Of a stretch of 64,000 nucleotides of DNA, positions 51,259-53,073 are shown in pieces. Each line of letters starts with the position of its first letter. Position 1 is the first letter of the stretch. A program made the position numbers and the translations under genes. Source of the DNA: Entomortierella parvispora E1425 (taxonomy: Eukaryota > Fungi > Mortierellomycota); contig BQFW01000012.1 in the NCBI GenBank assembly GCA_020891255.1, positions 682,001 to 746,000 of the forward strand, read 5' to 3'. The notes below the pieces were generated by a model. It did not search any database. It worked only from the letters and a program-made list of their open reading frames with translations, and was not told the origin of the DNA.

Positions 51259-53073
51259 ATGTCGGCGATGCGCCATTTGCTGGACCTCTGTAAACGCAGA
51301 GGATTCCTCTTCCAGTCCGCCGAGATTCACGGAGGCCTCCGAGGTGCCTACGACTATGGCCCGCTCGGCGTCGAACTTAAACGCAACCTCTCTCAGGAAT
51401 GGTGGAATGCCATGGTCTATCAGCGGTCCAACGTCGTCGGTATCGACACGGCCATTATCACCCCACCAGCCGTCCTGAAGACCTCGGGCCACGTGGATCA
51501 ATTCACGGATGAGATGGTCGACTCGAGACTTTCCAAGGAACGGTTCCGCCCTGACAAGGCACCGGAGCTCAAGCTCATTGAGCCTACAGCTGTGACAACG
51601 AGCCCTGTTCTTCCTATCACAGCACCCGACAAGATCACTGCCAAGGCATGGGAACACGAGATTAGGACTCAGTTCGCGAAAGGTGCCTTGATCACCCGTA
51701 AAGGCAAGGAGATTCAGTTGCAGGTGGAGCGCATGGAAAAGAACAAGATCATTCTCAAAAAGGACAACAACCACCCCGAGGCAGAGACAAACCTACAGAT
51801 CCCTTACCATGGCTATGTGGACCCCAACTCAAACTCGCCCTTCCTCACGGAATCACGACCTTTCAACCTGATGTTCAAGACCTACCTGGATCCTATCGAC
51901 CCCATTGACCGTGTGATCAGCACAGCTCTGACTTCGGAAAGAGCAGGACAGGACAAAGCAACGACTCGGCAGGAGGTTGACAAGACTCTGTACCCATCCT
52001 TGACCTACCTGCGTCCCGAGACGGCCCAGGGAGTCTTTATCAACTATGCAACCGTCCAAAGATCCCACCCTCATTTGAAGGTGCCTTTTGGAATTGCTCA
52101 GATCGGCAAGTCCTTCCGTAACGAGATTCGACTGGAGCATGCCATCTTTCGGACACCTGAATTCGAGCAGATGGAACTCGAGTACTTTGTCGCGCCCTGG
52201 GAAGCTGGTCGCGAATTTGAGCTCTGGCGTCAATCACGGATGGATTGGTGGCGTTATTATGCTCGCAACCCTGCCAAGGTCCGGGAAAGAGCGCATGCAC
52301 AGGACGAATTGGCGCATTACTCGAGCGGATGTGTGGACGTCGAATACTTGTTCCCTTGGGGCTGGGGTGAGGTCGAGGGCATCGCAAACCGAGGCGACTT
52401 TGATTTGAAAAAGCACTCTGAGGCAACAGGAATCAAATTGCAATACACAGATGCGGCTTTATTGCAGGAACGGCAACAAAGAGAAAAGTCTTCTGGCGTC
52501 AAGGAGGTCTCCAAGGAGGATCAGGACCGCGAGCGATTTATTCCCCATGTGGTGGAATCGTCCTGCGGGTTGAACCGAGCCATGCTGGCGTTCATGTTGG
52601 ATGCGATGGAGGTTGTGGACGATCAAGGACGCGTTGTTGAACTGGAGGGAGGTGAAACTGAGGATTCTAAGGGCAACAGTGCTGGAAAGTCAAAGTCGTC
52701 CTCATCACCTTTGAGGACGATCATGAAGCTCCACCCTCGATTGGCGCCCGTCAAGGTAGCGGTCTTGCCTCTGGTTTCCAACAACGAGGACCTGATGAAG
52801 GTCTGCCAAGGAATCTCTCAGAGCCTGAGACAGGAACTGCAGGTGAACGTGGCCTTGGAAAGTCAGAGCACGACCGTCGGCAAGCGGTACTACCGAATGG
52901 ACGAAATTGGAACGCCCTGGTGTGTCACTGTAGATTACGAGACTTTGCAGGATCAGTCGGTGACGATCCGCGATCGCGATACGGGATCTCAGAGAAGAGT
53001 CCGGATCGACGAAGTTTTGGATATTGTTCAGGATGGTTTGCGGCTACAGCCTAGACGGAAACAATTGCTTTAA
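51259..53073 (+). CDS. glyQS: Glycyl-tRNA synthetase, bacterial-type homodimeric (alpha2, glyQS-like); single exon, 604 aa
   Basis: LCKRRGFLFQSAEIHGG...YDYGPLGVELKRN..WW (motif 1), VLKTSGHVDQFTD, FNLMFKT, YLRPETAQG, VPFGIAQIGKSFRNE...IFRT.EFEQMELE (motif 2), ELAHYS...GWGEVEGIANRGDFDL, IPHVVESSCGLNR (motif 3) and the anticodon domain LAPVKVAVLPL...VGKRYYRMDEIGTPWCVTVDYETL.D..VTIRDRDT. The likely start is ATG 51259. Confidence 0.9.
   Translation: MSAMRHLLDLCKRRGFLFQSAEIHGGLRGAYDYGPLGVELKRNLSQEWWNAMVYQRSNVVGIDTAIITPPAVLKTSGHVDQFTDEMVDSRLSKERFRPDKAPELKLIEPTAVTTSPVLPITAPDKITAKAWEHEIRTQFAKGALITRKGKEIQLQVERMEKNKIILKKDNNHPEAETNLQIPYHGYVDPNSNSPFLTESRPFNLMFKTYLDPIDPIDRVISTALTSERAGQDKATTRQEVDKTLYPSLTYLRPETAQGVFINYATVQRSHPHLKVPFGIAQIGKSFRNEIRLEHAIFRTPEFEQMELEYFVAPWEAGREFELWRQSRMDWWRYYARNPAKVRERAHAQDELAHYSSGCVDVEYLFPWGWGEVEGIANRGDFDLKKHSEATGIKLQYTDAALLQERQQREKSSGVKEVSKEDQDRERFIPHVVESSCGLNRAMLAFMLDAMEVVDDQGRVVELEGGETEDSKGNSAGKSKSSSSPLRTIMKLHPRLAPVKVAVLPLVSNNEDLMKVCQGISQSLRQELQVNVALESQSTTVGKRYYRMDEIGTPWCVTVDYETLQDQSVTIRDRDTGSQRRVRIDEVLDIVQDGLRLQPRRKQLL

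Follow-up and report, generated by a model that had tools for sequence, protein, structure and literature searches.

An intact bacterial-type glycyl-tRNA synthetase gene in the nuclear genome of Entomortierella parvispora, with a probable ancient opisthokont ancestry of myxobacterial affinity

A 64,000-nucleotide stretch of the fungus Entomortierella parvispora E1425 (contig BQFW01000012.1, positions 682,001 to 746,000 of the forward strand; hereafter, the window) carries at positions 51259..53073 (+) a complete intronless coding sequence (CDS) whose 604 codons, followed by a stop, specify an alpha2 glycyl-tRNA synthetase (GlyRS) of the bacterial type. We show that this gene is intact, encoded in the nucleus, and under purifying selection. 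The best explanation of the data as a whole is that it is an ancient opisthokont gene of myxobacterial affinity that specifies an active GlyRS, most likely with a mitochondrial role, a reading to which we assign a probability of about 0.65. In the accepted picture, fungi and animals use one eukaryotic-type GlyRS gene for both compartments (PMC4558845, PMC3990555), and the literature that we searched yielded no description of this opisthokont GlyRS nor of any link between it and POLG2, the accessory subunit of the animal mitochondrial replicase. The gene is thus a new and well-supported member of a known enzyme family, in a setting that is unexpected and apparently undescribed.

The window gene encodes an intact bacterial-type GlyRS

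The translated protein scored 488 bits with the NCBIfam model NF003211 (cutoff, 312; E value, 2.6e-146) and 415 bits with TIGR00389 (cutoff, 243). Its phmmer matches among PDB sequences were Mycobacterium GlyRS at 341 bits, Thermus GlyRS at 311, human GARS at 202, and POLG2 at 105 to 110. The open reading frame (ORF) is uninterrupted from 51043 to 53073 (+), and the conserved start within it is the ATG at 51259 (MSAMRHLLDLCKRRGF...), the common start position across orthologs in our alignment (A1), which gives a protein of 604 amino acids (aa). Collinearity with bacterial homologs extends through the entire protein, so the gene has no introns. A preliminary description, made from the sequence alone, had called it an intronless bacterial-type alpha2 GlyRS, and the single ORF, the NF003211 score, and the collinearity bear this out. 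The signature motifs that it quoted can all be located in the translation: LCKRRGF, YDYGPLGVELK, FNLMFKT, DELAHYS, YLFPWGWGEVEGIANRGDFDL, LHPRLAPVK, and GKRYYRMDEIGTPWCVTVDYETLQDQSVTIRDRDT.

Conservation of functional residues is nearly complete. We defined universal GlyRS invariants as the 65 columns with an invariance of 95% or higher over bacterial and archaeal/eukaryotic GlyRS sequences; the window protein keeps 63 of them, including E254, R287, E289, E301, E371, R378, E433, and R440, the sole misses being Y24H and D534E. It also keeps 75 of the 79 bacterial GlyRS invariants. An AlphaFold2 (AF2) model built from a 103-sequence alignment had a mean predicted local distance difference test score (pLDDT) of 94.5 and a predicted template modeling (TM) score of 0.91. 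In Foldseek searches with this model, TM scores by hit were 0.87 to 0.94 for Mycobacterium and Thermus GlyRS, 0.76 to 0.84 for POLG2, and 0.63 to 0.77 for human GARS (0.63 to 0.80 for Nanoarchaeum and human GlyRS together). Relative to the ortholog in Lobosporangium, the nonsynonymous divergence (dN) was 0.17 and the synonymous divergence (dS) was saturated. On the best reading of these sequence features, the window protein is predicted to be an active GlyRS. It is not a member of the eukaryotic GRS1/GARS group, as both similarity scores and the tree placement described below favor the bacterial type.

The domain layout, with all features on the plus strand, is that of a class II synthetase interrupted by insertions. 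The N-terminal part of the catalytic domain (residues 1 to 99; 51259..51555) holds the motif 1 region (LCKRRGF, YDYGPLG, and SGH), aligns with residues 28 to 124 of Mycobacterium GlyRS at 100 bits in the PDB phmmer search, and keeps the invariants G15, D32, G34, P35, G37, W48, S76, G77, H78, F82, and D84. It is followed by insertion domain 1, a small alpha/beta module seen in A1 and in the AF2 model (residues ~100 to 199; 51556..51855), and by a two-helix insertion between FNLMF and RPETAQ that is apparent from motif spacing and the model (residues ~212 to 247; 51892..51999). The catalytic core (52000..52608), delimited by invariant columns and the Mycobacterium alignment, contains motif 2 (FRNE; R287 and E289) and motif 3 (GLNR; R440), as well as the glycine-binding acidic residues E254, E301, E371, and E433, which were identified from invariant columns and from alignment to the glycyl-adenylate-binding Mycobacterium enzyme; the Pfam scan gave a weak PF00587 match over residues 250 to 445. 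Within the core lies a charged helical insert (residues ~401 to 422; 52459..52524) opposite a gap in Mycobacterium GlyRS (A1 columns ~565 to 595); this insert is long in Mortierellaceae, whereas elsewhere it varies or is missing. A Ser/Gly/Lys-rich low-complexity loop with pLDDT values of 49 to 62 (residues ~452 to 485; 52612..52713) is restricted to the Mortierellaceae rows of A1. The inserts reported in the preliminary description are real, one of the two being disordered and of low complexity. The protein ends in a class IIa anticodon-binding domain, HGTP_anticodon (PF03129, 78 bits; residues 499 to 591; 52753..53031).

Distribution, ancestry, and nuclear integration

Orthologs were collected with a word-indexed search, a profile search of 1.84 billion representatives, and cluster look-ups. 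The word-indexed search returned ~35 near-full-length Mortierellaceae clusters at 65 to 96% identity, the nearest named ortholog being that of Gryganskiella cystojenkinii (87%). Mucorales, Umbelopsis, Endogonales, and Calcarisporiella followed at ~50 to 55%, Dimargaris, Ramicandelaber, and Basidiobolus at 41 to 51%, and Sorochytrium and Paraphysoderma at ~43%; next in the list were metagenome-assembled genomes (MAGs) of Myxococcales at 44 to 45%. The profile search added the fungi Massospora, Conidiobolus, Dispira, and Catenaria and, outside fungi, Fonticula alba, Capsaspora owczarzaki, Creolimax, Amoebidium, Sphaeroforma, Chromosphaera, and the calcareous sponge Sycon ciliatum. In total, named orthologs cover four fungal subphyla/phyla, Fonticula, four ichthyosporeans, Capsaspora, and Sycon. 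The survey of early-diverging fungi suggested at the outset thus found orthologs in Mucoromycota and Zoopagomycota; for Chytridiomycota, as for Dikarya and most animals, there was none among the named hits.

The Sycon gene takes up 25.6 kb for 543 residues on a 34-Mb chromosome (P0157; L004:8001-33628, OZ025899.1), so it is intron rich and plainly nuclear. It is the only animal ortholog found, its branch is the longest in the tree, and 12 of the 65 universal invariants are gone (53 kept), for example through T255L in RPETAQ. As key Glu and Arg residues are kept, the Sycon protein may be an enzyme in transition.

For phylogeny, we assembled 80 rows and 537 columns, consisting of 34 opisthokont, 13 Myxococcota-clade, 27 other bacterial alpha2, and 6 archaeal/eukaryotic-type sequences, the last of which (including Plasmodium and Gregarina) served as the outgroup. 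Trees were inferred with IQ-TREE under LG+C20+F+G4 with posterior mean site frequencies (PMSF), and supports are given as ultrafast bootstrap/Shimodaira-Hasegawa-like approximate likelihood ratio test (SH-aLRT). The opisthokont sequences were monophyletic (100/96) and divided into Holozoa (84/90) and Holomycota (88/87), the branching order within Holomycota being the Fonticula group, Blastocladiomycota, Zoopagomycota, and Mucoromycota. Their sister was a bacterial clade (100/99), with 100/100 for the union of the two. A branch with support of 100 separated the window protein from Plasmodium, Gregarina, and the archaeal-type rows, which answers the question of clustering with GARS raised in the preliminary description in favor of the bacterial type. 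A GTDB species-genome scan put names to the bacterial sister clade, which includes Nannocystis punicea, N. radixulma, N. bainbridge, Paraliomyxa miuraensis, and Enhygromyxa salina together with MAGs from Polyangiaceae and Bradymonadia and a small number that are labeled otherwise.

Because the opisthokont topology mirrors the species tree, it points to vertical inheritance from the opisthokont ancestor and not to a recent endobacterial donor. Alphaproteobacteria have an unrelated alpha2beta2 GlyRS, and the window gene is therefore not a mitochondrial heirloom. We propose that the gene was already present in the opisthokont ancestor and passed by vertical descent to Mortierellaceae, and that it would have been acquired early from a bacterial relative of modern Myxococcota (Polyangia, Nannocystales, and Bradymonadia), not from the alphaproteobacterial mitochondrion or the endobacteria of fungi. 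It would then have been retained in Mucoromycota, Zoopagomycota, Blastocladiomycota, Fonticula, ichthyosporeans, Capsaspora, and at least one sponge and lost in Dikarya.

Insertions and a cysteine motif can be set beside this tree. The distance from FNLMF to RPETAQ is 45 residues in the window protein. Among opisthokont and Myxococcota rows in which the two motifs were both identified, it is mostly 40 to 55, whereas the remaining bacterial and the archaeal/eukaryotic-type rows mostly have 14 to 18. Inside the clade, the exceptions were an unnamed sequence (P0123; 34) and one Myxococcota sequence (P0105; 71); those outside it were four bacterial rows (29 to 91, including low-complexity inserts) and Plasmodium (47). 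The extra segment forms helices 215 to 228 and 233 to 247 in the AF2 model, and this two-helix insertion of ~30 residues is a signature of the opisthokont and Myxococcota clade that agrees with the tree. A CxxC...CxxC quartet on either side of insertion 1 occurs in 14 of the 27 other bacterial rows, in 9/13 Myxococcota rows, and in none of the 34 opisthokont rows. In A1, the opisthokont orthologs conserve insertion 1, and the Myxococcota enzymes have a shorter version; its modeled fold in the window protein comprises strands 117 to 121, 145 to 166, and 180 to 182 and a helix at 125 to 139, all with pLDDT above 89. It had no Pfam match, in a scan that missed PF28494 (GlyRS_ins_1) even in P0117, a protein whose precomputed annotation carries that domain; an Atlas search places PF28494 in Bacteroidota-type GlyRS. 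With the corresponding part of the Sycon protein as the query, a PDB sequence search gave no relative of solved structure.

The gene is intronless and of bacterial type, and Mortierellaceae harbor Mollicutes-related endobacteria and Mycoavidus, so a recent transfer from such residents, contamination, or a chimeric assembly had to be considered. The preliminary description had left horizontal acquisition and ancient retention side by side and had named a Mollicutes-related donor as one candidate. Ancient retention is what the broad distribution and the species-like tree favor; recent acquisition does not fit them, and the Mollicutes-related candidate falls away together with any Burkholderiaceae donor, as the nearest bacteria are Myxococcota, at only 45 to 50% identity, and orthologs extend from early-diverging fungi to a sponge. 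Nor is the lack of introns a sign of recent transfer, since the Rhizopus and Lobosporangium orthologs are intronless too and the Sycon ortholog spans 25.6 kb.

The locus itself points the same way. The start codons of the GlyRS gene and of a gene resembling NSRP1 (49615..50895, minus strand; PF09745 NSRP1_N, 124 bits) lie 363 bp apart in head-to-head orientation, and both the spacer and the domain given for this arrangement in the preliminary description were verified. In Lobosporangium transversale, the ortholog is likewise intronless (1857 nt) and head-to-head with an NSRP1_N gene; the Rhizopus ortholog is surrounded by ordinary eukaryotic genes. The G+C content of the window gene (0.536) is like that of its neighbors (0.53 to 0.54) and not that of Nannocystis glyQS (0.69; 0.98 at third codon positions [GC3]). 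The listed sequencing runs included none of RNA. Logan contigs, from runs labeled "DNA?" or "?" and probably of DNA, bridge the gene and its flank in two samples. One, from the probable source sample, covers 49500 to 53209 as a single piece with zero differences. The other, from a different sample and study (strain X3) and ~96% identical, runs from 50741, inside the NSRP1-like gene, to 53197, past the GlyRS stop, with 76 substitutions and no indel or frameshift in the CDS. Single contigs thus bridge the two genes, and the integration of the gene in the fungal genome, claimed earlier from its surroundings, is upheld by the Lobosporangium synteny and by these contigs. Bacterial contamination and assembly chimerism are excluded by the bridging contigs, the NSRP1 synteny, and the host-like base composition, and for recent endobacterial transfer, contamination, and chimerism taken together we see next to no chance.

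It is also important to point out several features of the flanks and of individual ortholog records. Downstream of the GlyRS gene, a minus-strand ORF at 53736-57203 encodes 1,155 Ser/Pro/Thr-rich residues with no Pfam match, and the corresponding neighbor in Lobosporangium is a mitochondrial carrier (Mito_carr); since the two differ, the synteny is confined to the NSRP1 side. Run X4, which shares the species label but comes from a different sample, gave only two short contigs at a depth of 252 to 420; they match 50332-50490, in the conserved part of the NSRP1-like gene, at 90 to 95% identity, and they probably derive from another organism or a transcript in that sample. The Chromosphaera perkinsii ortholog (P0133; EukProt model of 1,473 aa) begins with a Peptidase_M3 domain that includes an HEFGH motif (PF01432, 299 bits), followed by GlyRS at residues 850 to 1471, and is either a genuine fusion or two adjacent genes merged in the model. 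A 412-aa Lobosporangium transversale protein (P0093) was rejected as a paralog, as it is a gappy alternative model of the P0018 locus with identical shared segments.

Function and compartment

The window protein would be expected to activate glycine to glycyl-adenylate in the motif 1 to 3 catalytic domain of a homodimeric class IIa enzyme and then to move the glycine onto tRNA-Gly recognized via the C-terminal anticodon-binding domain. We consider it probable that the tRNA in question is mitochondrial and that a canonical eukaryotic-type GRS1 would serve the cytosol. Both the cytosol and the mitochondria of a eukaryote require GlyRS. In species whose single eukaryotic-type GlyRS serves both compartments (yeasts, worm, fly, and human), the mitochondrial tRNA-Gly has the discriminator base A73, and Arabidopsis, which has a U73 tRNA-Gly, has kept a dedicated organellar GlyRS (PMC3990555). 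Given this correspondence, a retained bacterial-type enzyme is most simply viewed as a mitochondrial GlyRS. Support for that role also comes from N-terminal extensions resembling presequences (28 to 90 residues, rich in Arg, Ala, and Ser and poor in acidic residues) in Creolimax, Capsaspora, and the metagenomic protein P0121. The Creolimax ortholog has ~60 extra residues, the first 45 of which contain eight Arg and one Asp; the extensions of Capsaspora (~87 residues) and P0121 (~28) are likewise presequence-like. As the fungal protein has no cleavable presequence, its import would depend on an internal signal or on the N-terminal helix, which is basic and amphipathic and lies at residues 2 to 14 in the AF2 model.

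Alternatively, the window protein might be a second cytosolic GlyRS or a moonlighting paralog, with a stress role like that of yeast GRS2 or a part in Ap4A-type signaling, and have no mitochondrial role in fungi. All fungal orthologs are without a presequence, and the frames upstream of the start are closed in Lobosporangium and Rhizopus. A cytosolic function would also be biochemically possible, as Thermus alpha2 GlyRS charges both A73 and U73 tRNA-Gly in vitro (PMC3990555), and yeast has retained a second GlyRS that is stress inducible (PMC3306390). However, some holozoan orthologs have the presequence-like extensions described above, and the related animal POLG2 is mitochondrial. Moreover, retention for more than 1 billion years in many lineages with a near-complete active site is better accounted for by an essential, compartment-specific role. 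We therefore regard an exclusively nonmitochondrial function as unlikely, though as one to be taken seriously.

Several points weigh against a mitochondrial enzyme of ancient myxobacterial origin. Pett and Lavrov list GlyRS with the synthetases for which the separate mitochondrial lineage disappeared early in eukaryote evolution (PMC4558845). In A1, the fungal proteins, across the range from Mortierellaceae to Blastocladiomycota, have no presequence and begin ~8 residues ahead of the catalytic core; from its sequence, such a protein would by default be predicted to be cytosolic. The Amoebidium and Sycon proteins have no N-terminal extension either. With regard to ancestry, the sister relationship with Myxococcota and the reciprocal monophyly of the two groups leave the direction of transfer formally unfixed. 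In addition, some MAGs in the sister clade (L016, L023, L059, L061, L067, and others) are labeled Acidobacteriota, Thermoanaerobaculia, Neomarinimicrobiota, or Planctomycetota, which reflects either misbinning or mislabeling or transfers of this GlyRS subtype among bacteria.

The divergent intergenic region (50896..51258, assigned to neither strand) is a 363-bp spacer that would hold a shared promoter and 5' untranslated region and that includes a CT-rich tract. Its last 72 codons (51043-51258) are open, in frame with the CDS, and contain ATGs, and they were considered as a hidden presequence. This candidate was rejected. The segment is CT rich and not conserved; stop codons occur 2 codons upstream of the ortholog ATG in Lobosporangium and 17 codons upstream in Rhizopus; and strain X3 has indels of 1, 3, and 6 nt in the intergenic region, including a 1-nt deletion at 51059. 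Automatic annotation runs the risk of adding these 72 spurious Phe/Ser/Pro/Leu-rich residues to the GlyRS.

Relation to POLG2 and to other known systems

For the window protein, POLG2 was the next family after GlyRS in both sequence and fold searches, with E values of 1e-29 to 1e-31 among PDB sequences. Wolf and Koonin (2001) traced animal POLG2 to the acquisition by animals of a Thermus/Deinococcus-like GlyRS, as cited by Oliveira et al. (2015), who used Thermus GlyRS as the POLG2 outgroup (PMC4419789). We compared, for each of several queries, the phmmer bit scores from PDB searches against Mycobacterium GlyRS and against human/mouse POLG2. The bacterial enzymes P0145 and P0135 scored 509 and 456 bits against the former and 68/72 and 100/97 against the latter, and the Myxococcota enzyme P0097 scored 442 bits and 98/96. 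The corresponding values were 341 bits and 105/110 for the window protein, 315 bits and 104/112 for Creolimax, 341 bits and 110/105 for an unnamed sequence of the holozoan clade (P0132), 280 bits and 123/131 for Sycon, and 362 bits and 145/151 for Amoebidium. The queries least like other GlyRS thus tend to be most like POLG2, as would be predicted if POLG2 had descended from the holozoan branch. In addition, the lineage reaches Metazoa through Sycon, which implies that the animal stem already had a bacterial-type GlyRS.

From these sequence comparisons, we consider the chances about even that POLG2 arose from the resident opisthokont GlyRS of myxobacterial origin and not from an animal-specific, Thermus/Deinococcus-like transfer. 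The trend toward POLG2 within Holozoa, which comes from bit scores for a query set with neither Thermus nor Deinococcus, is suggestive. It is weakened by the bacterial protein P0135, whose 100/97 is close to the fungal score, and by the accelerated evolution of Sycon (53/65 invariants and the longest branch). PDB queries with the inserts only (Sycon 85 to 245 and Amoebidium 208 to 248) returned no POLG2 and nothing relevant, and the search with the Sycon protein found bacterial and fungal GlyRS only, with no POLG2 and no further animal sequence.

A further possibility is that the fungal protein itself assists the mitochondrial DNA polymerase as an accessory factor in the manner of POLG2, either as its sole function or alongside aminoacylation. 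That POLG2 ranks second after GlyRS (105 to 110 bits; TM by hit, 0.76 to 0.84) and that opisthokont members outscore the tested bacterial enzymes against it would be in keeping with such a role. Yet POLG2 is marked by the loss of aminoacyl-tRNA synthetase catalytic residues, and the window protein, unlike a pseudoenzyme, keeps essentially all catalytic and anticodon-domain invariants and scores 105 to 110 bits against POLG2 versus 341 against GlyRS. Yeast DNA polymerase gamma functions without an accessory subunit, which also counts against this role, and we consider it quite improbable.

Taken together, these observations indicate that the opisthokont ancestor probably had a second GlyRS, bacterial in type and myxobacterial in affinity, contrary to the accepted picture of early loss, and that this enzyme has persisted, strongly constrained, in the majority of early-diverging fungal lineages as well as in unicellular relatives of animals. 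The known myxobacteria-like genes of eukaryotes would thereby gain a translation enzyme. Should POLG2 prove to stem from this lineage, the origin of the accessory subunit of the animal mitochondrial replicase would need revision, living intermediates would exist, the Mortierellaceae gene would be a still-enzymatic fungal ortholog of the POLG2 ancestor, and the ancestral state of the mitochondrial GlyRS would be preserved in early-diverging fungi, ichthyosporeans, and Capsaspora. The distribution also opens a question of coevolution between the discriminator base of mitochondrial tRNA-Gly and the presence of a bacterial-type GlyRS. The genetics of Mucor, Rhizopus, and Mortierella offer a tractable system for studying how a dual-targeted GRS1 could replace a dedicated enzyme, as in Dikarya. 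More generally, an intronless and bacterial-looking gene in a fungal genome did not here equate to recent horizontal transfer.

Among known systems, the closest in architecture are the bacterial alpha2 enzymes (glyQS) of Mycobacterium (8u2q/8sld) and Thermus thermophilus (1ati/1b76), with which the window protein shares domain order, class II motifs, glycine-binding acidic residues, and the anticodon-binding domain, at 34% identity and a TM by hit of ~0.9. It differs from them in being encoded by a eukaryotic nuclear gene, in lacking the four-cysteine knuckle, and in having, besides two lineage-specific inserts, the insertion domain of ~100 residues and the two-helix insertion of ~30, both of which are missing from the Mycobacterium and Thermus structures. 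The GlyRS enzymes of Myxococcota (Nannocystis punicea, Enhygromyxa salina, Paraliomyxa miuraensis, and Bradymonadia MAGs), at 45 to 50% identity, have the two-helix insertion in common with it, but mostly keep the cysteine quartet, have a shorter insertion 1, and show a GC3 of 0.98.

The eukaryotic/archaeal-type GlyRS (human GARS1, 2pme; yeast GRS1) belongs to the same alpha2 class IIa family (TIGR00389) and catalyzes the same reaction. It is far more distant (202 versus 341 bits; TM by hit, 0.7), lies on the opposite side of the root branch (support 100), and has different insertions and a WHEP domain. POLG2 shares a GlyRS-derived fold with class II-like and anticodon-binding-like domains (TM by hit, 0.76 to 0.84, to the window protein), but is a noncatalytic processivity factor for DNA polymerase, whereas the window protein keeps 63/65 GlyRS invariants. 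For the cellular arrangement proposed here, the organellar GlyRS2 of Arabidopsis provides a precedent, as it is a separate bacterial-type GlyRS in organelles with U73 tRNA-Gly (PMC3990555), although it has a transit peptide and the unrelated glyQ/glyS (alpha-beta)2 architecture.

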